NCBI RefSeq assembly: GCF_963921235.1
Contig: NC_086101.1
Coordinates: 20,956,001 to 21,020,000 of the forward strand
Length of the DNA: 64,000 bases
From: Mobula hypostoma
Lineage: Eukaryota
Direction of reading: 5' to 3'
Shown here: positions 26,472 through 64,000 of the stretch, piece after piece
Numbering within the stretch: position 1 is the first letter of the stretch
Layout of the letters: each line of letters begins with the position of its first letter
Translations under genes and position numbers: made by a program
The notes under the pieces: model-generated
What the model was told of the DNA's origin: nothing
Databases searched by the model: none
What the model saw: only the letters and a program-made list of their open reading frames with translations

Positions 26472-29400
26472 CAGACATCCCACCCGGTCAGAGACATCCT
26501 GGACCCTGGCACCCTGCAAAGACTCATTTCAGGGAGATAGCACCACCATTTCAGGGAGCTAGCACCCCCGCCCCCCGCAACCCCATATCCAACCGCCCCC
26601 GCCCCCGTCGACTTCCAAGGGTGCAAGTATACAAGACATTTAATTATGAAAGAACAGAACAATTTATTTGACGCATATTGAAAGTATTTACACACACACA
26701 ATATGAGTATATATATTGTATATATATTCCTTGTTGAGTATTTTGTTGGCAATCTCAATGCGAATGCAAATAGCTTTTCTAGTTCTTTTGCAAACTTTCC
26801 TTGTACTGTGATGTGGTTCTGCTGAAAAGAACTGTGAAATACTTGAGCAGCCTTCCCTGCGATTAGCCTCCCTAATATGTTGTGGTCCCTAAAAGAAATA
26901 AAAGCATAAGGTGTATCCTTATTATATTGTCTTATGTAATACTTTGTTTAGTGATTTTACCTAATCTGTAAACCAATCTGTAATCTGTAAACCGGGTATA
27001 TGCAGAAACATAGAAACATAGAAAATAGGTGCAGGAGTAGGCCATTCGGCCTTTTGAGCCTGCACCGCCATTTATTATGATCATGGCTGATCATCCAACT
27101 CAGAACCCCGCCCCAGCCTTCCCTCCATACCCCCTGATCCCCGTAGCCACAAGGGCCATATCTAACTCTCTCTTAAATATAGCCAATGAACTGGCCTCAA
27201 CTGTTTCCTGTGGCAGAGAATTCCACAGATTCACCACTCTCTGTGTGAAGAAGTTATTCCTAATCTCGGTCCTAAAAGGCTTCCCTTTATCCTCAGACTG
27301 TGACCCCTCGTTCTGGACTTCCCCAACATCGGGAACAATATTCCTGCATCTAGCCTGTCCAATCCCTTTAGGATTTTATGCGTTTCAATCAGATCCCCCC
27401 TCAATCTTCTAAATTCCAACGAGTACAAGCCCAGTTCATCCAGTCTTTCTTCATATGAAAGTCCTGCCATCCCAGGAATCAATCTGGTGAACCTTCTTTG
27501 TGCTCCCTCTATGGCAAGGATGTCTTTCCTCAGATTAGGGGACCAAAACTGCACACAATACTCCAGGTGTGGTCTCACCAAGGCCTTGTACAACTGCAGT
27601 AGTACCTCCCTGCTCCTGTACTCGAATCTTCTCGCTATAAATGCCAGCATACCATTCGCCTTTTTCACCGCCTGCTGTACCTGCATGCCCACTTTCAATG
27701 ACTGGTGTATAATGACACCCAGGTCTCGTTGCACCTCCCCTTTTCCTAATCGGCCACCATTCAGATAATAATCTGTTTTCCTATTTTTGCCACCAAAGTG
27801 GATAACTTCACATTTATCCACATTAAATTGCATCTGCCATGAATTTGCCCACTCACCCAACCTATCCAAGTCACTCTGCATCCTCTTAGCATCCTCCTCA
27901 CAGCTAACACTGCCACCCAGCTTCGTGTCATCCGCAAACTTGGAGATGCTGCATTTAATTCCCTCATCCAAGTCATTAATATATATTGTAAACAACTGGG
28001 GTCCCAGCACTGAGCCTTGCGGTACCCCACTAGTCACCGCCTGCCATTCTGAAAAGGTCCCGTTTATTCCCACTCTTTGCTTCCTGTCTGCTAACCAATT
28101 CTCCATCCACATCAATACCTTACCCCCAATACCGTGTGCTTTAAGTTTGCACACTAATCTCCTGTGTGGGACCTTGTCAAAAGCCTTTTGAAAATCCAAA
28201 TATACCACATCCACTGGTTCTCCCCTATCCACTCTACTAGTTACATCCTCAAAAAATTCTGAGATTCGTCAGACATGATTTTCCTTTCACAAATCCATGC
28301 TGACTTCGTCTGATGAATTCACCGCTTTCCAAATGTGCTGTTATCACATCTTTGATAACTGACTCCAGCAGTTTCCCCACCACCGACGTTAGGCTAACTG
28401 GTCTATAATTCCCCGGTTTCTCTCTCCCTCCTTTTTTAAAACGTGGGGTTACATTAGCCACCCTCCAATCCTCAGGAACTAGTCCAGAATCTAACGAGTT
28501 TTGAAAAATTATCACTAATGCATCCACTATTTCTTGGGCTACTTCCTTAAGCACTCTAGGATGCAGACCATCTGGCCCTGGGGATTTATCTGCCTTCAAT
28601 CCCTTCAATTTACCTAACACCACTTCCCTACTAACACGTATTTCTCTCAGTTCCTCCATCTCACTGGACCCTCTGTGCCCTACTATTTCTGGAAGATTAT
28701 TTATGTCCTCCTTAGTGAAGACAGAACCAAAGTAATTATTCAATTGGTCTGCCATGTCCTTGCTCCCCATAATCAATTCACCTGTTTCTGTTTGTAGGGG
28801 ACCTACATTTGTCTTTACCAGTCTTTTCCTTTTTACATATCTATAAAAGCTTTTACAGTCAGTTTTTATGTTCCCTGCCAGTTATCTCTCATAATCTTTT
28901 TTCCCCTTCCTAATTAAGCCCTTTGTCCTCCTCTGCTGAACTCTGAATTTCTCCCAGTCCTCAGGTGAGCCACTTTCTCTGGCTAATTTGTATGCTTCTT
29001 CTTTGGAATTGATACTATCCCTAATTTCTCTTGTCAGCCACGGGTGCACTACCTTCCTTGATTTATTCTTTTGCCAAACTGGGATGAACAATTGTTGTAG
29101 TTCATCCATGCAACCTTTAAATGCTTGCCATTGCATATCCACCGTCAATCCTTTAAGTGTCATTTGCCAGTCTATCTTAGCTAATTCACGTCTCATACCT
29201 TCAAAGTTACCCCTCTTTAAGTTCAGAACCTTTGTTTCTGAATTAACTATGTCACTCTCCATCTTAATGAAGAATTCCACCATATTATGGTCACTTTTAC
29301 CCAAGGGGCCTCTCACGACAAGATCGCTAATTAACCCTTCCTCATTGCTCAAAACCCAGTCCAGAATAGCCTGCTCTCTAGTTGGTTCCTCGACATGTTG

Positions 29401-30210
29401 GTTCAAAAAACCATCCCGCATACATTCCAAGAAATCCTCTTCCTCAGCACCTTTACCAATTTGGTTCACCCAATCTACATGTCGATTGAAGTCACCCGTT
29501 ATAACTGCTGTTCCTTTATTGCACACATTTCTAATTTCCTGTTTAATACCATCTCCGACCTCACTACTACTGTTAGGTGACCTGTACACAACTCCCACCA
29601 GCGTCCTCTGCCCCTTAGTGACATTAAAATATTATCATGGAGTCGCTTTTTAATTCTATTACAACTTTAAGCATGTCTGCAGGGAGTTTGGCCTCATCTC
29701 GTAGGATATCAATAGAGTAGCTCCTTAGCAGCTGGCCAGTTAGTTTAAATAACGTTAGCTATGCTAGTGAACGAATGACACCTGTTAAACTCACCTCAAC
29801 ATGTCTTTTACAGTCCTAACACACAATGGGCAATAGAAGAGTCACTGTTGCAAACAGTGCAGCGACCAACACTGTCATTATTTTTGACCCCTATTGGGCA
29901 GGGGTACAGTTTAGTGTAATCTGGGCTGAAGTGCGTTTTATATTTTCTTTCTTTTGCGCGACACGAAACTGAACTGATGGAGAGACACAGGTCGACTGTA
30001 AAGCCCGCCCACAGAGAAAACTGATAGGTCTACTTAGCATAAAGAGAGACCAATCAGGATGCTCGCTCTCGCTCCCGTTCTCCCTCTCCCTCTCCCTCTC
30101 CCTCTCCCTCTCATTGCCGGGATATTGTATATAATTTGCGGGCGTCAGGGAGCTGCTATTAATATGCGGGAGACTCCCGGAAGAAATTTTCGGGAGAGGT
30201 GGGATGTTTG
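26472..30210. mobile_element. Possible non-autonomous DNA element delimited by a 13-bp inverted repeat, with a CR1 inside
   Basis: CAGACATCCCACC at 26472 and GGTGGGATGTTTG ending near 30210 (1 mismatch). No TSD seen. Confidence 0.3.
27003..29610 (-). mobile_element. Young 5'-truncated CR1 (part of APE, RT, 3' tail); same family as 55156-58890
   Basis: ORFs 27231-28232 (KFADDTKLGG), 28249-28776 and 28882-29598; agaaacatagaaacatagaaaatagg tail. Confidence 0.95.
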
Positions 30211-36950: not shown

Positions 36951-37040
36951 TCACATCAGGATTGTGTCATCGTATATCGTCGTGAGCTCTGCCCTCGGAT
37001 TTTGCCGTCCTTTGTTGGCATCCAGTTGATGTAAATGTCT
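36951..37040 (-). CDS. Candidate terminal cytoplasmic exon of the CD2/SLAM-like gene
   Basis: Strong acceptor tacttttttttcaaaccacag. Phase 0 gives RHLHQLDANKGRQNPRAELTTIYDDTILM*; phase 2 gives DIYINWMPTKDGKIRGQSSRRYTMTQS*. Locally CpG-rich. Confidence 0.5.
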   Translation of the reverse strand, partial: RHLHQLDANKGRQNPRAELTTIYDDTILM

Positions 37041-40866: not shown

Positions 40867-40891
40867 CTGGTCCCTGGCAATGCTTGTTCTC
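40867..40891 (-). CDS. Candidate 25-nt cytoplasmic micro-exon (GEQALPGT), phase 1 to 2
   Basis: Donor CAG|gttagt; modest acceptor ttgtgatcag; in frame with the TM exon. Confidence 0.25.
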
Positions 40892-42943
40892 CTGATCACA
40901 ACATAAGCACTGATTTATTTCTCCTTTCAGTGTCAGAAGCTTTAAATTAAAAAAAAACATGCTGTTGAAACCATTTCTGGATGCTCCTTCTGTTTTGTTT
41001 TCAGAAAATATTTTCTCTAAATATCTTTTCCCTTAAAGATTACCTGTGCTCAATCCTTCCACCAGCCATAACTTCTCCATTCAAAAACCTGACTGACTGC
41101 ACAACCACAAGGGCATCTTAGAGAAGTCTGATCCTATCCTTAATGTGCACACTGTGGGCATTTCCTTTCACTGACCTACCCAGCTGCCATCCAGCCCCAT
41201 TAGGAACTTTCACTAGGAATGAAGAATCCAGTTATTTCTCATTGGTATCAAGGCTGTACAGTAGACTTTGGACCAGGGAAAATCATAAACTCTCACCCTC
41301 AGAGGAAAAAATAAATAACCAAGGTGGAATTCCATTCTTCATTGTCAAGTGAACTGGGAGTACTCTTCACAGCCAATACAATTTAAGAAAACACCTGTGC
41401 CCAGTCTAGGTGAACTGACATTTACATCATGATGTTGGTCACCCCTGAATCTTCCGTTGAAAGGATGAGTTGGTCATCCCCAATTGTCTCCAGTTTCCAC
41501 AATACGAACAGTGTTCTGTGCTAAAGGATAAAAAACTGCCTAATCAGACAGACTTCATGAAGTTAATGGTGAATCCTGTGGGCAATGTTCCCAATGCTTG
41601 GCTGTCCCTGCTTTCCCTTGTCCTTTGCTTCAGCCACTGAAATGCAGATAGTGTAGGGGCAGGAGCAGGAAACCAAGCAGGTTACTCCCATTATCATTAC
41701 TTTACTCACAGACTGGAATTTCACTTTTGCAACATAAAACCATTCCTTCCATTCTGGCTGTCTGGATGGTTCTTCAGACTGTCCAATTCATAACCATTTT
41801 AATCACCTTTAATCTCCATTGAAAAATTCCCAGCTTGATTTATTTATTTGTCTACAGCACCTTCTCAAATAATGATTGTGTGCTGCACTCTCTTTGTTTC
41901 CTCAGCCTCCACCCTCAGTGTACAACATCCAAGAAACATTTGCTGTTAATAATGAAACCCATGCAGCACAGTTATGAAGTTACATTATCTGTAAACTAGT
42001 TTAAATGGAATGCAGATATATAAACATCACTAAAACTTTTAAGAGCAGATTGTATTACATGGCACTTCGGAGCAACAGGCATTGGTTTTCTGCAATGTAC
42101 CACTGTTAGGAATGAAATAACTTGGATCCATTCAATACTGAACTTGCTTTTGTGAACTGAGCTAGCTCCCAATTGTGGTTCACACTTTGGCCCTGCATAT
42201 TCTTAGATCCCATAAGGGGTACACAGATGGTTGCTGAACAGCAGGGAAATCCACACCCCCGGCAATGGAGAGTATGCAAAGCAAGACTGTTCCTTTATGT
42301 GTTGGATTACAAAGAGGAAATTGGGGTCCGTTGTGTTGGGGTGGAGAGATGTTTGAGATTTGTAGCTGGGGGAGAGGTTTTCTAGTCAGGTGGGTACCTC
42401 CAATCAGGAGATGGCAGAGAGCTTGTCCGGTGTTGTGGGTTGGAACCATGGGGGAGAAAATAGTGTGTGGTGCAAGACCTGACTGACAGGCACTGCAAAA
42501 GCTTTCTTCTGTAGTGACAGGCCGAGAAATGGTGATGGCCATTCCGAAGTGAAGGAAAATCCCAGGGATAGTGCGCGTTGAGGGCCACTGCACTTTCCTG
42601 GGATGCTCTTTGTCAAGCTGCAAAAGGGATCAGAACTGGAGTCACACGCACCACATTTTATAGTCACCAAATTTCATTAAACATGCGGCACACATGGTGG
42701 AACATGTGGTGAGTTATCCCCTCAGTTCAAGGACTTATTGTATTTGTTTTCCTACTCAGGATGTGGTATACCCTCACTCCACTAATAATTGCATGGTGAT
42801 GATCACTAGTTTAGTGAGACCATACACGATGGGAACTAAAGCAAGAGATCCCATTAATAAGGACTAACTTGAAGCCAACTATTGTGATGGGCATTACCAG
42901 GGGTACACAATCTGACTTAATAAGAATACTCTAGAGTACTTGC

Positions 42944-43060
42944 CTTTATTGATCTTGAGTTCTCTCTTCCAATACAAAGTGAAAACAATAGCCGTGATGA
43001 AAGCTATCAGAGTAATGGTAGTAATTAAACAAATGTGGAATGGCCCCAGTAGTTTCTCAC
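42944..43060 (-). CDS. Transmembrane exon of the CD2/SLAM-family receptor
   Basis: Acceptor cccttttcag; 117 nt, phase 1-1. Encodes GEKLLGPFHICLITTITLIAFITAIVFTLYWKRELKINK (hydrophobic run plus basic stop-transfer). Donor AAG|GCAAGT, a GC donor. Confidence 0.85.
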
Positions 43061-44499
43061 CTGAAAAGGGATGGACATTCATCTGTGATTCTCTCAACAT
43101 TTAAGTTAAACTTGCTTTAAAATAGGAAATACAACAGACTGGTGAAGCTGAGATCAAGAGGAGAGCTGATACAGAGTGTGACATTAACATTCAGTGAAGG
43201 AACAAAATGATTTTAATGGTCAATTATTTCCTGTAACATGCTTGTGATGACACACGCGTGAAGCTGCAGTACCAGGAATCCCTACACCACAGAAGGAAGC
43301 TAGCCACCAATTCCAGCATTCCCTCTCCCTTGGTCTTTCCACACAGCCCAGATTGATTGTTTCCACCGATCCTACATGTGGTTGATTGCACACCACAACC
43401 ACTCCATTCAAAAGCATATTCCCTCCCTTGTGCCTTTTGCTCAGTATCTGTGGCATGTAGCCATGGAAACATCTGCTAATGGAAAAACATCAAGGATACA
43501 TCAAGATGTATAAAATGATAAGACTGGAGAGACATTCAAATAAGGCTAATATAAGAGGGCATAATTATATAGTGATTGGATAATAGTATAGGGGGTTCAA
43601 TCATTCAGAGGTTCAGTGGTTCCAGAGAATGTCTGCAGTATACAACCTGAAAATCTTACTCTCTGCAGACAGCCTTGAAACAGAAGAAAAATCCCAAAGA
43701 ATGAATGACAGAAAAGATGTAAGAACCCCAAAGCCCCTTGTCCCCTCCCACACACAAGCAACAGCAAGCAGCATTAACCCTCTCCCCACTTATTCTGGCA
43801 GAGCGCATCAGCACTCCCACCAGCCATTATGCAAGAAACAGCAAAGGGCCAAAGAGAGAGCATGGTCTACAGTCCATAAAAAACTACTGTTCAACATCCC
43901 TCAGGCTCTCTCTCTCAGCTAAGCAGAGACGGATATCACTCCTTCCACAGTAAGAGGGACACACAGTCGCTGTTTCGATGTTACAGTCCGTAGCACTACT
44001 TTTATTTGAGTTTCCCCCAACTCGAGAATCAGCAGCAACCTCTCACTCACCATCGAGACAGAGAGAGAGCGGTCACCCGAGTGGAGAGGCCTCTGACAGT
44101 CTCGAGAGAAGGCAACTAACAAAGTCATTAAGAAGGAAAAGATGGAATATGAAAGTAAGCTGGTTAATAATATTAAAGAGGATACAAAAAGTTTCTTCAG
44201 ATACATAAAGTGTAAAAGAGAGGTGAGAGTGGATATCGGACCATTGGAAAATGATGCTGGAGAGGTAGTATTGGGGGACAAGGAATTGGCAGACAAACTG
44301 AATAAGTATTTTGCATCAGATTTTACTGTGGAAAACACTGGCAGTACGGTGTAAGTTCCAGAGTGTCAAGGGTCATGAAACGTGTGAAATTGCCATTACG
44401 AAGGAGAAGGTTTATGGGAAACTGAAAGCTCTGAAGGTAAGTCACCTAGACCAGATGGTGTACACCCCAGGTTTCTTAAAGAAGTAGCTGAAGGGATTG

Positions 44500-45200
44500 T
44501 TTTTATTTTTACACCCCAATTAACTCTGGCCACACCCCCCATAAAACCGCAGCCACTACACTACCCTATCCACCAAAGCCCTATATGCTCACCACACAAA
44601 ACTTCACAACCTGTTCTCTCCCAACCCATTCTCTCCCAACCCAACATATACATCCACCATCCCTACCCTCAAACCTAATCTTAATGTCCAAGGGGGCACA
44701 TACCCCCCACTAACCCTAGGCACAACCTCACAAATGCAATGACTTGTGTAGGAGGGGGGGAAAGATCCAATAAAGGCAAGTGTTGGACCTGGTTAATGAA
44801 GGCATGGGCCAGATCAATGTGGCAGGGTTGTGTGACACAGAATCTCAAGTGACAAGATCAAGAAGCACAAGAGAGCTGATTCACCCACTGCCCGAATAAT
44901 CTCAATCCGTCTCGTTGTCTCAATGTTTCGGCTTCCCATGATGCTACAGTTTGTGATGCCGGCGAAAAATCAGCTCAACAAGACCATACAAGGTCACGAC
45001 CTGAAGGAGCTTCCTTCCAGGCCTCGCCTGGAGATATTGAAAACACAGCCAATTGGCAAGCCCTAAGAACGTGAACACGCTGCCGTCAAGCTCTTTGCAG
45101 TCAAGCTCTGACTGGCCCATAGATGGGGCCAGAATGAATAGGGCAGCAAAGTTAAGTCTGGAGTTTATGCTCAGGCTGCACATTCCTAAAACTCACCGAT
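44500..45200 (-). mobile_element. Degenerate L1-like 3' remnant
   Basis: HNPATLIWPMPSL resembles the fish L1 ORF2 C-terminal ...PATLIHMFW.CP.L; followed by an A/C-rich tail. Confidence 0.4.
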
Positions 45201-45315
45201 CTATCTCAGACCTGACTAATCCATTGTATGGGTATTGAAATTAGAATAGAAAGGAAATAAATAACTGTCAGTATTTGAGAAAAGTTTACGGGTGTTGAAG
45301 AAGTAATGCACCAAC

Positions 45316-45603
45316 CTTCAGTGTCTGGACAGAGGTTTCTGAGATCCACACTCATAGTTGCCTCACTGACAGGGTTCCTCACTGTGCAGTTGTACACTCT
45401 GTTATCACTCGGCCTTAAGGACAATTCCAGACTTCTCCCTTCGTCAGTCAGTACATGAGACTCATCGGTCGTGACCTTATCATCTCCTGTCCACCAAGAG
45501 TAAACTGGCTTCGTGCCACGTTCCAGTAAACAGTCCAAGCTAATGTTACATAGCTCATTTGAGACAAATTGGCTGCTAGTTATTACGGGTGTTGATACAC
45601 GTT
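45316..45603 (-). CDS. Ig C2-set exon of the CD2/SLAM-family receptor (intact copy 1)
   Basis: Acceptor ttttcttataaacag; 288 nt, phase 1-1. ERVSTPVIT...CNISLDC...YSW...YNCTVRNPVSE...LRNLC carries the CD2/SLAM C2 signature with two Cys pairs. Donor AG|gttggt. Confidence 0.92.
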
Positions 45604-46603
45604 CTGTTTATAAGAAAAACAAAAAAAAGATAATGGTTTGTCAACAAGAGATATTAATTGTGAGCCTGTCTCAAGAACTTTGATATAGGGCTAAGAGAAG
45701 CCTGTTCAGCCATTCATCAATCTCATTTTTATCCTATCCTAAATTCCTTTTATATACAAAAGATCTATCTACTTTAGTATTGATTGACCTTAATAATTAA
45801 GTCTCCCCAGTCTTCTAGAGTAGTCCTACCCCTTACTCTGACTCTAGCCTTCTCAGGCTGGGCAGATATCCACCAAGCATCCACTCTATTAGGACCTATG
45901 AGATTTGTTTCTTAAGTTTTGGTGAGATTACCTTTCATTCTTCTGAACTTTTAGGAATACAGGTGTACACTACTCAGTCTGTTGTATGGAAACCTATCCA
46001 TCCCAGGAACTGTACTGCTGACATTTAGTTAGAACTCCCATGTATGTCACGTTTTAAATAAGGAGACTGAAATGGAACTTGTATGAACAGCTTTGAGAGT
46101 ACTAGAACATTTCTTGTCCATATTATCTCTGTTCCACGTGGATTTTCAGTTAGCAAGCTCAATAGTCTAGTAGCTTCCACTCCTGTTCTTCACTTTCACG
46201 TCTCTTCTGCACTGTACAATTCTCCTTCCAAATAGTAAGGAGGAGAGGTAAATGCTGCTGTCGTACCCTCTCACCACTGAACATTGTGGTTTCTGGGACA
46301 ATAGGATGAGGATGCAGGTGGCAGCAAGTATTTATTGTAAGAGATCATACTGTCAGATGACTTAGTGTTCCCTTCTGGAAGGGAACCATCCAATTTTTTT
46401 GCCAGCAGTATGTACAGTAAACAGACAGTGCTTCGGACCGGGTCCTTCACAAAAGCAGGTGCTGCATCTGAGCAGTGTTTCAGTGTTCCCTCTGCCTTGT
46501 GTATCCCACAGGCTTCGGCTCGACCGCAAACATCTCCCCTTTCATCTTTAATTACTCTAAAAATGTCAGACCAGAATATATGTTATAATGAAAGTAATAT
46601 TAC

Positions 46604-46933
46604 CATAAATTCGCAGTTCCATCACTTCATGATGGACATCTGCATCGGTCCTTGCATTTATTTCATACAGGCCTTCATCACTGTATGTTAGGTTCTGTAT
46701 TTCCAGGCTATAGTCCTTCAAGTTTAATGTTACCCTCTCTCTCTTACAATTTGTTGGATTGTTTGTATATTTCACACATAATTGAATCTTTTTTTGATGA
46801 GATGAATTTGTGTAGTCCCAAGCAATGAATGAAATGTTTTCTCCTGACACATTTCCTGGCAAAGTGACTGACTGTCCCAGTGTCCCATTCACCACACAAC
46901 GAGTAGCCGGGTTCCCATTGGTCCCTGCCAGAA
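46604..46933 (-). CDS. Ig V-set N-terminal exon of the CD2/SLAM-family receptor (copy 1)
   Basis: Acceptor ccttctgtttcag, donor TG|gtaata; 330 nt, phase 1-1. NGTLGQSVTLP...W...SLEIQNLTYSDEGLYE lacks the canonical V-set disulfide, as in CD2/SLAM N-domains. Confidence 0.93.
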
Positions 46934-47660
46934 CTGAAACAGAAGGACATGTCATTAGAGTCATTAGTCTCAGTGTGTTGGTGTCCACATTTCCACAGCA
47001 TGGCAACTCTAGCAGGGTCCCAAATCTGAGGGACAAGAGGAAGCAGGCAGATGAGAACACCACCACATGTTGGGACGATGCCCTTTTACCTCAGTGGCAC
47101 ACATGCTATCTAATGACCATGGAGGAAAACAATTAAAACACAAAAGTGGTTTCTGATAGAACAGCTATGCTCCACGCAAGGCTGTGAATACACAATGCAT
47201 TTTTGTTTGTGACACGGGAGACTACAGTTGCTGGTACATAGAAATAATCTGCTGGAGGAGATCAGCATTTCAAACTGCTTCTATGGTGGGGGGGGGTGGT
47301 CGATTAATGTTTTGGGTAGAAATCCTGCATCATTACTTACCCTCACAGATGCTGCCTGACCTGCTGAGTTCCTCCAGCAGTTTATGTTTTTTGCCACAGT
47401 TTAATTGCATTGGCACAACATTTATTTTTGCTGGCTCTAAACCCTAGAACATCCTCCCCAACACCATTGTGCGGGCATCTTCCCCAGAAGGACTTAAACT
47501 GTTCCAGAAGGCAGCTTACCAGCACTTCTCAAGGGCAGTTTGTGATGAGCAGTAATGGTGACCTTGACAGCAAAGTACAGGGTGGAGAAGGGAAATGGTG
47601 GGAGAACGATCTGGTCCCATAAACTACAATAGGCACACTCAGTCATCACTTTATTCAGTT

Positions 47661-50005
47661 CATAGAATCATAGAACCATAGACCCATAGAATATTACAGC
47701 ACAGAAACAGGGTTTTTGGCCATTCTTGGCTGTGTCGAACCTTTTTTCTGCCTAGTCCCACTGACCTGCTCCTGGACCATATCCCTCCATACACCTCTCA
47801 TCCATATACCTGTCCAACTTTTTCTTAAATGTTAAAAGTCAGCCCGCATTTACCATTTCACATGGCAGCTCATTCCACACTCCCACCACTCTGTGTGAAG
47901 AAGCCCCCCCACTAATGTTCCCTTTAAACTTTTCCCCCTTCACCCTTAACCCATGTCCTCTGGTTTTTTTTTCTCCCCTAACCTCAGTGGAAAAAGCCTG
48001 CTTGCATTCATCCTATCTATACCCATCTTAATTTTATATACATCTATCAAATCTCCCCTCATTCTTCTACGCTCCAGGGAATAAAGTCCTAACCTATTCA
48101 ACCTTTCTCTGTAACTCAGTTTCTCAAGTCCTGGCAACGTCCTTGTAAACCTTCTCTGCACTCTTTCAACCTTATTAATATCCTTCCTGTAATTTGGTGA
48201 CCAAAACTGCACACAATACCCCAAATTCGGCCTCACCAATGCTTTATGCAACCTCACCATAACATTCCAACTTTTATACTCAATACTTTGACTTATAAAG
48301 GCCAATGTACCAAAAGCTCTCTTTACGACCCTATCTACCTGTGGCGCCACTTTTAGGGAATTTTGTATCTGTATTCCCAGATCCCTCTGTTCTACTGCAC
48401 TCCTCAATGCCTTACCATTAACCCTGTATGTTCTACCTTGGTTTGTCCTTCCAAAGTGCAATACCTCACACTTGTCTGTATTAAGCTTCATCTGCCATTG
48501 TTCAGCTCAGTTTTCCAGCTGGTCCAAATCCCTTTGCAAGCTTTGAAAACCTTCCTCACTGTTCACTACACCTCCAATCTTTGTATCATCAGCAAATTTG
48601 CTGATCCAATTTACCACATTATCATTGAGATCATTGATATAGATGACAAATAACAATGGACCCAGCAGTGATCCCTGTGGCACACCATTAGTCACAGGCC
48701 TCCACTCAGAAAAACAATCCTCCACTACCACTCTCTGGCTTCTTCCATTGAGCCAATGTCTATTCCAATTTACTACCTCTCCATGTATACCTAGCGACTG
48801 AATCTTCCCAACTAATGTCCCATGCAGGACCTTGTCAAAGGCCTTACTGAAGTTCATGTAGACAACATCCACTGCCTTCCCTTCATCCACTTTCCTGGTA
48901 ACCTCCTCGAAAAACTCTAATAGATTTCTTAAACATGACCTACCATGCACATGACTCTCCCTAATAAGTCCCTGTCTATTCAATTACTTGTAGATTCTAT
49001 CTCTTAGTACTCCTTCCAATAACTTACCTACTACCGACGTCAAATTTACTGGCTTATAATTTCCCGGGTTACTTTTAAAGCCTTTTTTAAACAACGGAAC
49101 AAGATGAGCTATCCGCCAATCCTCCGGCACCTCACCCGTAGATACCGACATTTTAAATATATCTGCCAGGGCCCCTGCAATTTCAACAGCAGTCTCCTTC
49201 AAGGTCCGAGGGAATACCCTGTCAGGTCCTGGGGATTTATCTACTCTGATTTGCCTAAAGATAGCAAGCACCTCCTCCTCTTCAATCTGTATAGGTTCCA
49301 TGACATCACTACTTGTTTGCCTTATTTCCATTGATTCCATGCCAATTTCCTTAGTAAATACAGACGCAAAAAACCCATTTAAGATCTCCCCCATTTCTTT
49401 TGGTTGCACTCTGATCTTCAGGAGGACTAATTTTATCCCTTGCTATCCTTTTGCTCTTAATATACCAGTGGAAGCTCTTTGGATTATCCTTCACCTTGAC
49501 TGCCAAAGCAACCGCATGTCATCTTTTAGCCCTCCTGATTTCTTTCTTAAGTATTTTTTCGCACTTTTTATACTCCTCAAGCACCTAATTTGCTCTCTGT
49601 TTCCTATACATGTCATACATCTCTCTCTTCTTCTTTATCAGAGTTGCAATATCCCTTGAGAACCAAGAGTCCTTATTCCTATTCACTTTGCCTTTAATCC
49701 TGACAGGAGCATACAAGCTCTGCACTCTCAAAATTTCTCCTTTGAAGGCCTCCCACTTACCGATCACATCCTTGCCAGAGAACAACCTGTCCCAATCCAC
49801 GCTTTTTAGATCCTTTCTCGTTTCTTCAAGTTTGGCCTTTTTCCAGTTTAGAACCTTAACCCGAGGACCAGATCTATCCTTGTCCATGATCAAGTTGAAA
49901 CTAATGGTGTTATGATCACTGGAACCAAAGTGCTCCCCTACACAGACTTCCATCACCTGTCCTAACTCATTTCCTAACAGGAGAGCCAATATTGCAGCCT
50001 CTCTA
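47661..50005 (-). mobile_element. 5'-truncated CR1 LINE separating the two V-C2 cassettes and fused to the copy-2 C2 exon
   Basis: catagaatcatagaacc tail at 47661; RT ORFs 47946-49409 (SKFADDTKIGG); APE C-terminus AILALLLGNELGQV...SDHNTI from 50005. Confidence 0.93.
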
Positions 50006-50252
50006 GCCTCACTGACAGGGTTTGTCACTATGCAGTTGTACACTGTGTTGTTATCACTCGGCCTTAAGAACAATTCCAGTCTTCTCCGTCCATCAGTCAG
50101 TACATGAGACTCATCGGTCGTGACTTCATCATCTTCTGTCCACCAATTGAAAACTGGCTTCGTGCCATGTTCCAGTAAACAGTCCAAGCTAATGTTACAT
50201 ATCTCATCTGAGTCAAATTGGCTGCTATTTATTACAGGTGTTGATACATCTT
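50006..50252 (-). pseudogene. Ig C2 exon copy 2, truncated after NPVSEA by the CR1; native donor lost
   Basis: EDVSTPVIN...CNISLDC...YNCIVTNPVSEA reads directly into CR1 ORF2 (ORF 49585-50187). The acceptor atgaacag is intact. Confidence 0.88.
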
Positions 50253-51237
50253 CTGTTCATAAGAAAAATACAAATAATGATAATGGTTTGTCAATGACAG
50301 ATATTAGTTATAAACATGTCACAAGATCTTTGATATATAGCTAGGAGAAGCTTGCTCTGCCATTCATCAATCACATTTTTACCCTATCCTAAATTCCTCT
50401 TATATACAAAAGATCTATCTACTTCAATAATTAAGTCTCCCCAGTTTTCTAGAGTAGTCACATCCCTTAGTTTGACTCTAGCCTTCTCAGGTTGGGCAGA
50501 TGTTCCCCAAGCATCCACTCTATTAGGACCTATGAGATATGTTTCTTAAGTTTTGGCACAATTACCTTTCATTCTTCTGAACTTTTAGTGCACAGGTGTA
50601 CACTACTCAGTCTCTTGAATGGAAACCCATCCATCCCAGGAACTGTACTGCTGACATTTAGTTAGAACTCCCAGGTATGTCTCGTTTAAGATAAAGAGAC
50701 ATAAATGGAACTTGTATCAACCGCTTTGAGAGTACTAGGAATATTCCTTCCCCATGTTATCTCTGTTCCATCTGGATTCTCTGAAATGAAGCTCAGTAGA
50801 CCAGCACCTTTGTCTCCTGTCCTTCACTTTCACTTCTGTTCTGCACTGTACAATTTTCCTTCCAAATAGTAAGGAGGAGAAGTAAATGCTGCTGTCGTAC
50901 CCACTCACCAGTGAGCAATGTGGTTTCTGGGACAATAGGATGAGGACGCAGGTGGCAGCAAGAATTTATTGTGAGAGATCATACTGTCAGATGGCTTAGT
51001 GTTCCCTCCCAGAAAGGAACCATCCAATTTTTTTGCCAGCAGTATGTACAGTAAACAGACAGTGCTTCAGACCGGGTCCTTCACAAAAGCAGGTGCTGCA
51101 TCTGAGCAGTGTTTCAGTGTTCCCTCTGCCTTGTGTATCCCACAGACTTCAGCTCAGACCAAAACATCTCCCCTTTCATCTTTAATTACTCTAAAAATGT
51201 CAGACCAGAAAATATATTATAATTAAAATAATATTAC

Positions 51238-51567
51238 CATAAATTCGCAGTTCCATCACTTCTTGATGGCGATCTGTATCGGTCCTTGCATTTATTTCAT
51301 AGAAACCTTCATCACTGTCTGTTAGGTTCTGTATTTCCAGGCTACAGTCCTTCAGTTTTAACGTCATCCTCTCTCTGTTACAAGTTGTTGGGCTGTTTTT
51401 ATATTTCACACATAATTGAACCATTTTTTGATGAGATGAATTTGCATAGTCCCAAGTAACGACTGAAATGCTTTCTCCTGACACATTTCCTGGCAAAACG
51501 ACTGACTGTCCCAGTGCCCCATTCACCACACGATAAGTAGCCAGACTCCCATCAGTCTCTGCCAGAA
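51238..51567 (-). CDS. Ig V-set exon, copy 2 (open frame, intact splice sites)
   Basis: 330 nt, phase 1-1, same acceptor and donor as copy 1; about 75% aa identity to copy 1 by hand count. Confidence 0.9.
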
Positions 51568-52289
51568 CTGAAACAGAAAGACAAACCATTAGTCCCAGTG
51601 TATTGGTGTACACATTTCCATAGCATGGTCACTCAGCAGCGTTCCAAACTCAAGGGACAAGAGGAAGCAGGCAGATGAGGACACCACCTCATGATAAGGG
51701 GATGCTCTTTTACCTCAGTGGCACACGGGGTGTCTAATGACAATGGAGGAAGACAATTGAAACACAGAAGTGGATTTCTGATAGAACAACTGTGCTCAAT
51801 ACAAGGCTGTGAATACACAGAGCATTTTTGTTGGTGATACACGAGACTGCAGTTACTGATACATAGAACAAAAATAATCTGCTGGAGGAGATCAGCATTT
51901 CAAACAGCTTCTCTGGCGGGGGTGGGGGTGCTGCTATTAATGTTTTGAGTAGAAACCATACATTACTTACCCTCACAGAGGCTGCTTGACCTACTGAGTT
52001 CCTCCAGCATTTTGTGAGGGGCAGAAATAGGCCATTTGGCCCATGGAGTCTGCTCCACCATTCCATCAGGGCTATAAAAAGTTTTTCCCTTTCAACTCCT
52101 TTCTCCCGTATTCTTGCGTGTCGCTTGACACCCTTACTAATCAAGGACCTATTGACCTCCATTTTAATTATACCCAATGGCTTCACCACCCTCATTCAGC
52201 ATTCAGTCCATCTCTCCATCACTGCTCTTATTATTGATAATTTTTCTGACCACCTCATTTATTGAAATTTTGGGGCAGATTACCGAAGT

Positions 52290-52510
52290 GATTAGTGTTA
52301 ACGCTATTAGAGTGGCAGCAACCCAGGTTCATTCTCCAATGCTGTCTGTAGGGAGTTTGTACGTTCTCCACTTGACTGCATAGGTTTTCTCCGGGTGCCC
52401 TGGTTTCCTCCCACATTCCAAAAATGCCTCGTTTAGTAAGATAATTGGTCACATGGGTGTAATTGAGCATCAGGGCTCAGTTGGACCGGAATCGGCTCTT
52501 ACCCTGCTGT
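52290..52510 (+). mobile_element. V-SINE/HE1-type SINE
   Basis: Core gggagtttgtacgttctcc...ggttttctccgggtgccctggtttcctcccaca. Confidence 0.7.
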
Positions 52511-55155: not shown

Positions 55156-58100
55156 TAGAAAACATAGAAAACATACAAAATAGGTGCAGGAGTAGGCCAT
55201 TCGGCCCTTCGAGCCTGCACCGCCATTCAGTATGATCATGGCTGATCATCCAACTCAGAACCCTGTACCAGCCTTCCCTCCATATCCCCTGATCCCTTTA
55301 GCCACAAGGGCCATATCTAACTCCCTCTTAAATATAGCCAATGAACTGGCCTCAACTGTTTCCTGTGGCAGAGAATTCCACAGATTCACCACTCTCTGTG
55401 TGAAGAAGTTTTTCCTAATCTCAGTCCTAAAAGGCTTCCCCTTTATCCTCAAACTGTGACCCCTTGTTCTGGACTTCCCCAACATCGCGAACAATCTTCC
55501 TGCATCTAGCCTGTCCAATCCCTTTAGGATTTTATACGTTTCAAAAAGATCCCCCTCAATCTTCTAAATTCCAACAAGTATAAGCCTAGTTCATCCAGTC
55601 TTTCATCATATGAAAGTCCTGCCATCCCAGGAATCAACCTGCTGAACCTTCTTTGTACTCCCCCTATGGCAAGGATGTCTTTCCTCAGATTAGGGGACCA
55701 AAACTGCACACAATACTCCAGGTGTGATCTCACCAAGGCCTTGTACAACTGCAGTAGTACCTCCTTGCTCCTGTACTCGAATCCTCTTGCTATAAATGCC
55801 AGCATACCATTTGCCTTTTTCACCGTCTGCTGTACCTGCATGCCCACTTTCAATGACTGGTGTATAATGACACCTTGGTCTCGTTGCACCTCCCTTTTTC
55901 CTATTTGGCCACCATTCAGATAATAATCTGTTTTCCTGTTTTTGCCACCAAAGTGGATAACTTCACATTTATCCACATTAAATTGCATCTGCCATGAATT
56001 TGCCCACTCACCTAACCTATCCAAGTCACCCTGCATCCTCTTAGCATCCTCCTCACAGCTAACACTGCCGCCCAGCTTCGTGTCATCCGCAAACTTGGAG
56101 ATGCTGCATTTAATTACCTCATCCAAGTCATTAATATATATTGTAAACAACTGGGGTCCCAGCACTGAGCCTTGCGGTACCCCACTAGTCATTGCCTGCC
56201 ATTCTGAAAAGGTCCCGTTTATTCCCACTCTTTGCTTCCTGTCTGCCAACCAATTCTCTATCCGCATCAATACCTTACCCCCAATACTCTGTGCTTTAAG
56301 TGTGCACACTAATCTCCTGTGTGGGACCTTGACAAAAGCCTTTTGAAAATCCAAATATACCATATCCACTGGTTCTCCCCTGTCCACTATACTAGTTACA
56401 TCCTCAAAAAATTCTATGAGATTCGTCAGACATGATTTTCCTTTCACAAATCCATGCTGACTTTGTCAGATGATTTCACCGCTTTCCAAATGTGCTGTTA
56501 TCACATCCTTGATAACTGACTCTAGCAGTTTCCCCACCACCGATGTTAGGCTAACTGGTCTATAATTCCCTGGTTTCTCTTCCCCACCTTTTTTAAAAAG
56601 TGGGGTTACATTAGCCACCCTCTAATCCTCAGGAACTAGTCCAGAATCTGAAGAGTTTTGAAAAATTATCACTAATGCATCCAGTATTTCTTGGGCTACT
56701 TCCTTAAGCACTCTGGGATGCAGCCCACCTGGCCCTGGGGATTTATCTGCCTTTAATCCCTTCAATTTACCTAACACCACTTCCCTACTAACATATATTT
56801 CCCTCAGTTCTTCCATCTCACTGGACCCTCTGTCCCCTACTATTTCCGGAAGATTATCTATGTCCTCCTTAGTGAAGACAGAACCAAAGTAATTATTCAA
56901 TTGGTCTGCCATGTCCTTGCTCCCCATAATCAATTCACCTGTTTCTGTCTGTAGGGGACCTACATTTGTCTTAACCAATCTTTTTCTTTTCACATATCTA
57001 TAAAAGCTTTTACAGTCAGTTTTTATTATCCCTGCTAGTTTTCTCTCAATCTTTTTTCCCCTTCCTAATTAAGCCCTTTGTCCTCCTATGCTGAACTCTG
57101 AATTTCTCCCAGTCCTCAGGTGAGCCACTTTTTCTGGCTAATTTGTATGCTTCTTCTTTGGAATTGATACTATCCCTAATTTCCCTTGTCAGCCACTGGT
57201 GCACTACCTTCCTTGATTTATTCTTTTGCCAAACTGGGATGAACAATTGTTGTAGTTCATCCATGCGATCTTTAAATGCTTGCCATTGCATATCCACCGT
57301 CAACCCTTTAAGTGTCATTTGCCAGTCTATCTTAGCTAATTCATGTCTCATACCTTCAAAGTTACCCTTCTTTAAGTTCAGAACCTTTGTTTCTGAATTA
57401 ACTATGTCACTCTCCATCTTAATGAAGAATTCCACCATATTATGGTCACTCTTACCCAAGGGCCCTCTCACGACAAGATTGCTAATTAACCCTTCCTCAT
57501 TGCTCAATACCCAGTCTAGAATAGCCTGCTCTCTAGTTGGTTCCTCGACATGTTGGTTCAAAAAACCATCCCGCATACATTCCAAGAAATCCTCTTCCTC
57601 AGCACCCTTACCAATTTGGTTCACCCAATCTATATGTAGATTGAAGTCACCCATTATAACTGCTGTTCCTTTATTGCACACATTTCTAGTTTCCTGTTTA
57701 ATACCACCCCCAACCTCACTACTACTGTTAGGTGGCCTGTACACAACTCCCACCAGCGTTTTCTGCCCCTTAGTGTTATGCAGCTCTACCCATATCGATT
57801 CCACATCCTCCCGGCTTATGTCCTTTCTTTCTATTGCGTTAATCTCCTCTCTAACCAGCAATGCTACCCCACCTCCTTTTCTTTCATGTCTATCCCTCCT
57901 GAATATTGAATATCCCTGAATGTTGAGCTCCCATCCTTGGTCACCCTGGAGCCATGTCTCTGTGATCCCAACTATATCATATTCATTAATAACAATCTGC
58001 ACTTTTAATTCATCCACCTTGTTACGAATGCTCCTTGCATTGACACACAAAACCTTCAGGCGGGCTTTTACAACTCTCTTAGCCCTTATACAATTATGTT

Positions 58101-62700: not shown

Positions 62701-64000
62701 ATAATGCTGAATTTTTACAAAGCACAAGTTATGTCCCAGCCAGAGTGTGGCGGATGCAGCCCTTGAGCACAGATTTCAGAGTCCATGACATCTTCTGGGA
62801 CCTGGGATGAACCACTTCCATTACCTGGTTCGTTGTTGGAGTGGAGAAGCTTGAGGAAATGTGAATGAGGTACCGAAAATGTTTTGGTTGGGGTCTCATC
62901 ACATTTAAAATGGTGTATTGTCAGTTAGCAAGTGTAACATTCCCTCTTCTCAACCTTTGGCCATAAAGAAACAAGACATGTAGCCTGACACATTATTTCA
63001 CATTAAATAGATCGAAACCGGTACTGAAATTTAGGAAGTTCAAACCATGGTCATGTTATCACCAATCCAGACAGTGGCTTATTATATTACTTGTGTAGAG
63101 AATAGAACACTTTGTTTCTAGACTTTCAATGGGTTGGATATTAGTTTCTTCACCTCCATGACAGAAGATACAAAATAGACTTGCAATTGACTAAAGAGTA
63201 AATTGTTGCCAGATGCAGATAAACTGAAATATATTGGTGGTTTTATGGATGTGGAGAAGACAGCGCGTGGGTCATGCCTAGTAGCTAATATTTCAGTGAC
63301 GTCTGAATCAAACCACACCTTGCTGAGCAATAGAAAATCCACACCATGTTGGCAGCACCAGGCAACTAAATAATACAAGCTGTGTACTTATACAGGCTGT
63401 AACACATTGGCAAATAATACTATAGTTGCTGTGTCATAGGTTTCCATGAAAAGGGGAGAGCAACTTAGGGGCTTCAGATATCGGGGCACAGTAGTAAATA
63501 CAATTACACCTCTTCATATTACAGATCCAGTTGCAGAGCATTCCACATGTGCATCAAAATGCCAATCTTGTGGGATATATTTTATTAATTGCTGATTTAT
63601 TTGTAGCAATATTACTTTATGTGTTGCTTCCGAGTTGTATGTACCATGTTGTGCAACTTGCAACATTTTTTCTTTTCACAGTATAAATGTATACAGTTGA
63701 ATAACAATAAATTTGAACTTGAACTTGAATGATCTGCAAGTTAATGAATAAATGAAGGGTATTTATAGAACTGCTTTACACATTATTAATAGAATGTATT
63801 CATTCTCCCTCTCTGTAAGCTGGGCATAAGATACCAGATAGTAGTAATGTGCAGGAGTGGTATTTCTCCCCATTATCTGGGACACTTCTTTCTCCTGGTC
63901 AGAAATGGGTTGTACTGGGCTCTTGTTATGCACACATCAATGCAGTATGGCCTACATTGTGACTACACTTCAGTAGTAATTACATCAAAAGCATAGGGAT

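Follow-up and report, generated by a model that had tools for sequence, protein, structure and literature searches.

Receptors of the SLAM/CD2 family use the outermost V domain to recognize one another, and the addition of a second V domain could therefore change what a cell binds. In mammals, the ectodomain of LY9/CD229 (SLAMF3) has the layout V-C2-V-C2, made of two complete V-C2 units, and the receptor carries ITSM motifs, while SLAMF8 and SLAMF9 are tail-less members of the same family. A literature search on cartilaginous-fish SLAM genes returned nothing relevant. Ray annotations do contain V-V-C2-like models, in which a single C2-type match comes after two or three V-set matches (Pristis pectinata P0018/P0104 and the Hemitrygon "Ly-9-like" P0011), but these share only ~33–35% identity with the V domain studied here and are different, older genes.

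We analyzed a gene that lies on the minus strand of a 64,000-nt window from the devil ray Mobula hypostoma (the window is the whole stretch of DNA under study and is without any N). Like LY9, it encodes a SLAM-family receptor whose ectodomain has been enlarged by repeated Ig units, but its first C2 is a fragment lacking a splice donor, its predicted product is V-V-C2, and both of its tyrosine motifs are broken. Comparisons across species were made at the protein level throughout. The best full-length relative is Hemitrygon akajei P0074 (XP model, 304 aa, 75% identity), which shares with the devil ray gene a MAK-type leader (also found in H. akajei P0080) and a similar transmembrane (TM) segment (also found in Hypanus sabinus P0082), and whose tail is short and carries no switch motif. 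A deletion in C2, referred to here by its product DNR-V, is common to the devil ray gene, P0074, P0080, P0082, and H. sabinus P0084. Unlike the devil ray gene, these four stingray genes are modeled with one V domain and no second block.

Exons and predicted product

The V-V-C2 product is already public as an automatic RefSeq prediction, XP_062905755.1 (P0001, 421 aa, "SLAM family member 5-like"), a model of the same gene with the architecture leader-V2-V1-C2-TM-short tail. The gene spans 35.7 kb, and its leader exon lies ~8.6 kb past the end of the window. The V2, V1, and C2 segments of the model match exons in the window at 100%, and its TM segment agrees with the window up to the splice point that the model uses. 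The model carries no information on the LINE junctions or on the broken C2 copy described below.

The two V exons, V2 (51238..51567) and V1 (46604..46933), are both 330 nt long, phase 1-1, and open. They match residues 33–142 and 143–252 of the RefSeq model, respectively, at 100% and are recognized by Pfam as V-set domains (E = 8.2e-11 and E = 5.6e-12). Their splice contexts are identical and canonical (acceptor ...TTTCAG/TT, donor TATG/GTAATATT). Both lack the B- and F-strand cysteines, that is, they are SLAM-type V domains without the canonical B-F disulfide, and the best solved relatives of V1 are SLAMF6 2if7 (E = 1.1e-07) and SLAMF5 2pkd. The complete C2 exon (45316..45603, 288 nt, Pfam Ig_3 E = 2.1e-08, 100% match to the RefSeq model) is of the DNR-V form and shows the family pattern of four cysteines for a two-disulfide membrane-proximal C2; 29 SLAM models from rays and sharks align along its length. 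A remnant of a second C2 exon, C2′ (50006..50252), retains an intact acceptor and 81 open codons and has no donor; its reading frame continues for 139 codons into a LINE. Since the last ~14 residues, comprising the G strand and the fourth cysteine, are missing, C2′ lacks the two-disulfide feature of the family. Paralogues M. hypostoma P0076 and P0081 are located on the same 199-Mb record, as expected of a clustered family.

Splicing would bypass the donor-less C2′ and give a leader-V2-V1-C2-TM transcript, as RefSeq predicts. An earlier note on this DNA had proposed exactly this in-frame V2-V1-C2-TM product, which now coincides with the architecture of the public prediction. The same note had described both V exons as intact and all exons as phase 1-1, and the open frames, the identical splice sites, and the phases of the Ig exons agree with this. 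It had also seen no convincing signal-peptide exon between the copies, where a tblastn search with four family leaders likewise recovered no leader-like exon. An Rfam scan of 45000–52400 yielded zero matches.

Downstream of the Ig exons the gene is damaged. The TM exon (42930..43060, within ORF 42894–43100) has GC at the donor used by the paralogues (after 42944); the RefSeq model takes a non-family donor, the GT after 42930, and read-through of the exon ends 11 codons on. The first cytoplasmic exon, which encodes the SVLYAV motif in paralogues, survives as a remnant (40867..40939) with its splice sites kept and a 1-nt deletion in the Leu-Tyr codons; this frameshifted exon is omitted from the RefSeq model. 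In the last coding exon (36951..37040), a 7-nt deletion relative to the paralogues changes TIYDEI... to TIYDDTILM-stop. These two frame-breaking deletions remove both tyrosine motifs, leaving no cytoplasmic switch motif of the form TxYxx(V/I). Some mammalian SLAM members also lack switch motifs, so their loss does not exclude membership in the family. Any product made would probably be a two-V molecule of an adhesion or decoy type that has no tail; if none is made, the gene is presumably decaying.

The duplicated block and its LINE junctions

V2 and V1 lie in two copies of one block: self-BLAST aligns 45360–47386 with 50006–52016 at 86.9% identity over 2,042 aligned nt (E = 0), introns included. 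Copy 2 (50006..52016), which consists of an intron piece, the V2 exon, an intron, and the first 247 nt of a C2 exon, is continuous with the upstream flank, and copy 1 (45360..47386) runs unbroken into the remainder of the complete C2 exon. A duplication of about 45330–47395 at 50006–52015 had been reported in the earlier note; it is real and does include the introns, but the limit at 45330 overshoots by ~30 nt, since homology extends no further than 45360, within the C2 exon. The copies differ by 13% at the nucleotide level, roughly evenly along the block with the exception of one near-identical 135-nt intron stretch. This divergence, together with a different element at each outer flank, rules out an assembly or haplotype artifact.

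The gap between the copies is occupied by a CR1-like LINE and 274 nt of unique sequence. The LINE (about 47661..50005, similar to the window's other LINE copies over 47666–49996) is 5′-truncated at the end of the endonuclease domain, so that its ORF begins in the last part of this domain directly after C2′. Its reverse-transcriptase ORF contains at least three frame changes and two in-frame stops, and its 3′ end is a ATTCTATG-type octamer microsatellite that stops at ~47661. Between this tail and copy 1, the 274-nt sequence (47387..47660) contains AATAAA (47426–47421) 28 nt ahead of an A6 run (47392–47387) that touches copy 1, and it has the appearance of a 3′ transduced flank that includes a poly(A) site. 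A second copy of it was not found in the window. At the outer end of copy 2 lies a 3′ fragment of another CR1-like element (52017..52190), which lacks the octamer tail present in other copies. The LINE, the 274-nt sequence, and this fragment are all oriented on the minus strand, like the gene.

The inner ends of both copies are thus the two ends of one retro-insert, and C2′ stops exactly at the CR1 5′ junction. We did not find the missing end of C2′ nearby in the locus, and the 274-nt sequence shows no similarity to the missing C2 end, to its intron, or to the flank of copy 2. A simple insertion of the CR1 into a complete C2′ is therefore excluded. Unequal crossing-over between flanking LINEs was also rejected, since the remainder of the exon, not a LINE, comes after copy 1 and the LINE itself is not duplicated, as was 3′ transduction of the block by the outer CR1-like fragment, which has no tail and does not precede copy 1, where the 274-nt sequence is found instead. 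On its outer side, copy 2 is bounded by the tail-less 3′ end of this fragment, which no model accounts for unless the same site is taken to have been used twice.

Known retrotransposon insertions offer partial likenesses. As in a target-site duplication, repeats flank a 5′-truncated element exactly, but here the repeat is 2,030 nt long compared with the usual ~21 bp (median 21 bp, PMC12350158), and the stretch between the CR1 tail and the downstream repeat comprises 274 nt and contains a poly(A) signal. Retrotransposon insertion-associated deletions are documented from base pairs to 1 Mb (PMC4229983). In the human L1/Alu/SVA cases, a 5′-truncated retro-insert with a transduced 3′ flank likewise sits exactly at the rearrangement junction (PMC4229983), whereas the element in the devil ray is a CR1 rather than an L1 or one of its passengers, and deletion and duplication are not separable at this locus.

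Age of the copies and signatures of selection

At the protein level, neither copy has the other as its closest relative, and the tree has a star-like shape: the copies are 76.8% identical to each other and up to 79.5% identical to V-C2 units of other ray genes. In a free tree, copy 2 pairs with M. birostris P0077 (83/93) rather than with copy 1, although an AU test does not reject sister status of the two copies (p = 0.27). The C2 of copy 1 has the DNR-V deletion of the stingray genes, and C2′ retains DNNTV. DNNTV is the ancestral state and the one-codon deletion a lineage marker, by which the two blocks parted before the split between devil rays and stingrays. Hemitrygon P0074 represents the gene type to which the leader, the C2, and the TM all belong, and C2′ has VTTDESH and RPSD in common with that type. 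Among M. birostris candidates of 231–737 aa, no protein exceeds 82% identity to any exon of the gene. The intact and the broken copy sit on terminal branches of equal length.

Pairwise dN/dS is 1.03 for V1 versus V2 and 1.34 for C2 versus C2′, values that are uninformative about the use of V2. No purifying selection of either copy against the other was seen (pairwise dN/dS ~1), exons are no better conserved than introns between the copies, and neither the V dN/dS nor the exon–intron comparison gives a selection signal favoring V2 use. By rough estimates, the open frame of V2 would survive under neutrality with a chance of ~0.15–0.2, and V2 and C2′ would both stay intact under neutral decay with P ~0.04–0.07. 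The ectodomain exons of copy 1 contain zero lesions, compared with ~4 roughly estimated under full neutrality, which argues that the gene is not simply dead. Furthermore, no stop or frameshift occurs in V2, V1, C2, and TM (~1,080 nt) or in C2′ (247 nt), while the ~170 nt of tail exons contain two lesions. The LINE between the copies has ~5–6 disruptions compared with ~10 expected at the age of the copies' split, a rough Poisson estimate that neither separates nor equates the two ages.

Origin of the arrangement and state of the gene

Taken as a whole, the explanation that we favor, with moderate confidence, is that two old V+C2 blocks were joined by one LINE-associated rearrangement and that C2′ is skipped to give a V-V-C2 product. 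The LINE-associated rearrangement itself was most likely either a fusion or capture of parts of old paralogues or a kilobase-scale target-site duplication. Because the blocks parted before the devil ray–stingray split, joining or capture of parts from two old paralogue lineages is probably a better account than a recent cassette duplication, and the indel marker and the trees lend indirect support to an insertion-associated deletion that would have joined tandem paralogues. In such an event, the upper block would have become linked at its downstream end, within the C2 exon, to the 5′ end of the truncated CR1, while the A-rich 3′ end of this retro-insert (the CR1 plus its 274-nt flank) would have become linked to the lower block at its upstream end. 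The upper C2 copy would have lost its last strand and splice donor in that event, or never had them. Several observations count against this explanation. The leader, C2, and TM of one gene type fit a duplication within a gene better than a simple fusion of two different genes, C2′ carries the two motifs of the P0074 type, the AU test is compatible with sister copies, XP_062905755.1 is a prediction only, and the outer end of copy 2 calls for a site used twice.

The first three of these observations favor an intragenic duplication, in which one CR1 retrotransposition generated a 2-kb target-site duplication and C2′ was truncated from birth. This course of events, which we consider rather unlikely, would have involved a nick in the intron just before the block, a second-strand nick 2.03 kb downstream in the C2 exon, and fill-in, all of it earlier than the DNR-V deletion, in the ancestor of this gene type. 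It accounts well for two copies that directly flank one sense-orientation retro-insert and for the unbroken transitions from copy 1 into the remaining C2 exon and from copy 2 into the upstream flank, and the decay of the LINE is roughly compatible with the age of the copies. However, the duplication would be ~100x the usual size (median 21 bp, PMC12350158), the free tree places copy 2 with M. birostris P0077, and by the deletion marker the split predates the divergence of Mobula and stingrays, yet the stingray genes are modeled as single-V. A V-C2-V-C2 stage is not indicated. The earlier note had suggested that a whole V+C2 unit was duplicated in tandem to form an ancestrally V-C2-V-C2, LY9-like receptor, whose first C2 was broken by a later CR1 insertion, and had taken the 3-nt indel (DNR-V versus DNNTV) as a sign that both C2 copies were once translated. 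The indel is present, but as a lineage marker it is not evidence of translation. Although C2′ is open across its 81 codons with an in-frame indel only, and V2 and C2′ are somewhat better kept than neutral decay predicts, the gene does not hold two complete V-C2 units in one frame: C2′ is cut at 50006, and neither its remainder nor its intron is present beyond the CR1. On either side, the homology breaks off precisely where the retro-insert begins, so a once complete C2′ needs an extra, unseen deletion of exact extent. Together with the dN/dS of the C2 pair, this makes the LY9-like history very improbable.

Whether the gene still makes a protein is a separate matter. The whole locus could be the wreck of a pseudogene, with the 421-aa model an annotation artifact enabled by phase-1 Ig exons and no stable protein produced, and we treat this as a serious possibility even though on balance we doubt it. 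The two tail deletions, the GC at the usual TM-exon donor, dN/dS of ~1 for both exon pairs, the equal terminal branches, and the lack of a close M. birostris protein are all consistent with decay. Conversely, the stops and frameshifts are confined to the tail exons, the V exons keep their canonical splice sites, and a missing tail has precedents in mammalian SLAMF8 and SLAMF9 and in the short, motif-less tail of P0074. That CR1-associated shuffling of an old paralogue's V exon ahead of another has produced an expressed, tail-less V-V-C2 protein found only in devil rays, with two different SLAM-type binding domains, is in our judgment unlikely; if true, it would be a natural case of LINE-driven exon shuffling making a new immune-receptor architecture.

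The weight of the locus is limited by a product that is predicted only, by the broken signaling tail, and by the multi-V SLAM-like models already common in ray annotations. It nevertheless shows at nucleotide resolution how a two-V change can arise: because all Ig exons are phase 1, one LINE-associated rearrangement that places a V exon in the first intron of another gene would yield an in-frame two-V protein at once. In addition, the DNR-V deletion provides a dated marker for sorting the fast-turnover SLAM cluster of rays.

Duplicated exons and the predicted receptor

The duplication of a V+C2 block with its introns, proposed in an earlier note, is borne out by window self-comparison, which aligns 45360-47386 (copy 1, downstream) with 50006-52016 (copy 2, upstream) at 86.9% identity over 2,042 aligned positions; a repeat finder and global alignment recover both blocks in register. 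The gene lies on the minus strand. In each block, about 450 nt of intron lead to a V exon of 330 nt, which an intron of 1 kb separates from the beginning of a C2 exon. Divergence of 13% and zero N in the window rule out an assembly artefact as the source of the duplication. Both V exons, V2 (51567-51238, minus) in copy 2 and V1 (46933-46604, minus) in copy 1, are intact as previously claimed, being open, in phase 1 at both ends and identical in acceptor and donor contexts. The complete C2 exon (45603-45316, minus) encodes a C2-type Ig domain with four cysteines. Its upstream copy, C2′ (50252-50006, minus), keeps an intact acceptor at 50252, while homology ends after residues NPVSEA and the last strand, fourth cysteine and donor are all absent. 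The 3-nt indel reported between the C2 copies is present.

V1 and V2 each match Pfam V-set, and the top solved relatives of V1 are SLAMF6 and SLAMF5. Both lack the canonical disulfide, as do V domains of the CD2/SLAM family. An exhaustive protein search with V1 as query returned a 421-aa Mobula hypostoma protein with two matched stretches, XP_062905755.1 ("SLAM family member 5-like"), ordered as leader, V2, V1, C2, transmembrane segment and 30-residue tail. Its V2, V1 and C2 agree 100% with the window exons, and its transmembrane segment agrees until the model's splice point; the gene span of 35.7 kb places the leader outside the window, about 8.6 kb past position 64000. The V-V-C2 product that the note had inferred thus equals this public model, itself a prediction. 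Identical V splice sites, together with a C2′ that has no donor and so is not definable as an exon, favour predicted leader-V2-V1-C2 splicing. The V-V-C2 model is already public. The present analysis adds a description of the junctions at nucleotide level, the rejection of a V-C2-V-C2 stage, the tail lesions and a deletion marker that dates the copies.

Sawfish and stingray annotations also hold V-V-C2-like models, so the architecture is one further variant in a very plastic family. In two Hypanus sabinus SLAM-family models, P0002 and P0082, a C2 or transmembrane exon runs directly into a transposase-like domain (Pfam DUF4371, ZBED5-type RNase-like), and both models begin in the intron ahead of the V exon; the likely cause is either mis-joining of the models or disruption of the genes by a DNA transposon.

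A retro-insert between the copies

The gap between the copies is filled by a CR1-like LINE (LINE-B, 50005 to ~47661, minus, in the same orientation as the gene) and 274 nt following its tail (Z, 47660-47387), so the inner homology ends of the two copies are the two ends of a single retro-insert. LINE-B resembles the window's other LINE copies from 49996 to 47666, and its reading frame opens within the final part of the endonuclease domain, directly after C2′. The reverse-transcriptase frame of LINE-B shifts at least three times and is interrupted by two in-frame stops. CR1 tails are typically an octamer microsatellite, and the LINE-B 3′ end is one. Z occurs once in the window and carries AATAAA 28 nt ahead of an A6 run that adjoins the first base of copy 1; compared with the missing C2 end, its intron and the copy 2 flank, Z shows no resemblance. 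By its sequence, LINE-B plus Z looks like a read-through LINE transcript carrying a transduced flank. On its outer side, copy 2 stops where another LINE ends: it adjoins LINE-A, a 3′ fragment of a CR1-like element without the octamer tail that its relatives carry.

These junctions bear on the LY9-like V-C2-V-C2 ancestor envisaged earlier. Had the CR1 inserted into a complete second C2 exon, the remainder of the exon would sit past the element, but it is absent there. A V-C2-V-C2 stage would therefore need an extra deletion of precisely the right extent, and we consider its existence very improbable.

The first ~145 nt of each block (47243-47386 and 51870-52016) are a 5′-truncated interspersed repeat that also has diverged copies at ~284-394 and 2766-2817; both retroelement 3′ ends sit at the point where it is truncated. 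On the minus strand (49588-50252) the C2′ frame stays open through 139 codons of the CR1 ORF2, so that Ig and LINE sequence form one in-frame chimera of 221 codons; its translation would require both inclusion of C2′ and a transcript end within the LINE. Two further CR1-like copies (27006-29620 and 55160-57775), 95% identical over 2.6 kb, are much younger than LINE-B; one retains a 307-codon open reverse-transcriptase piece, and their family may have been recently active.

Age and origin of the copies

Identity along the block is roughly uniform (83–92% per 100 nt, except for two 100-nt intervals, with 78% and 99%), and exons are no more conserved between the copies than introns. As proteins, the two V-C2 units share 76.8% identity and are no nearer each other than to units from other genes: copy 1 reaches 79.5% identity with M. 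birostris P0075, and copy 2 reaches 78.0% with the M. hypostoma paralogue P0076. Among the candidates searched, no M. birostris protein exceeds 82% identity to any exon of the gene. The ray-sequence tree is a star; the free tree groups copy 2 with M. birostris P0077, and a tree constrained to unite both copies is not rejected (p = 0.27).

The C2 indel provides a marker. Its long form, found in sharks, skates and most ray genes, is ancestral; the short form, DNR-V, is common to the gene's complete C2, Hemitrygon akajei P0074 and P0080, and H. sabinus P0082 and P0084. Because stingrays have DNR-V, C2′ retains DNNTV and no identity dip along the block marks later conversion, the copies separated before the DNR-V deletion, which itself predates the devil ray/stingray split. 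The stingray genes with this deletion have single-V models, which favours a devil-ray-specific rearrangement joining parts of two old lineages. A simple fusion of one gene to another is argued against by the leader, complete C2 and transmembrane exon, all of the same type as P0074, and by some C2′ residues common to that type. These same features leave the devil-ray-specific rearrangement with a serious rival, an old duplication within the gene that would formally be a target-site duplication of 2 kb. Ordinary target-site duplications are ~21 bp (PMC12350158). Insertion-associated deletions, from base pairs up to a megabase, are well documented (PMC4229983).

Within the V-to-C2 intron, a 135-nt stretch beginning ~90 nt past the V donor (46382-46516 and 51016-51150) has at most two differences between the copies against a 13% background (corrected P ~0.006) and no Rfam match. 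Gene conversion could account for this stretch, or it could be a conserved intronic element that serves V1 and V2 alike.

Selection and the cytoplasmic tail

We found no sign of selection for V2 (V1 versus V2 dN/dS 1.03), and dN/dS between C2 and C2′ is 1.34. By our rough Poisson estimates of expected lesions, drawn from divergence and gap counts, V2 would have a 15–20% chance of staying open under neutral decay. No lesions occur in ~1,080 nt of V2, V1, C2 and transmembrane exons or in the 247-nt C2′ remnant. The cytoplasmic part, in contrast, is damaged: a 1-nt deletion disrupts the exon that in paralogues encodes SVLYAV, the last exon has a deletion of 7 nt that abolishes the TIYDEI motif, and the transmembrane exon's usual donor (within 42921-42947) is GC. 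The locus is accordingly either a predicted tail-less receptor or a gene starting to decay from its tail. The Hemitrygon counterpart P0074 is seemingly tail-less too. Read-through past the transmembrane exon yields a short tail like that of P0074, which suggests that this gene type lost its spliced signalling tail before the devil ray/stingray split.
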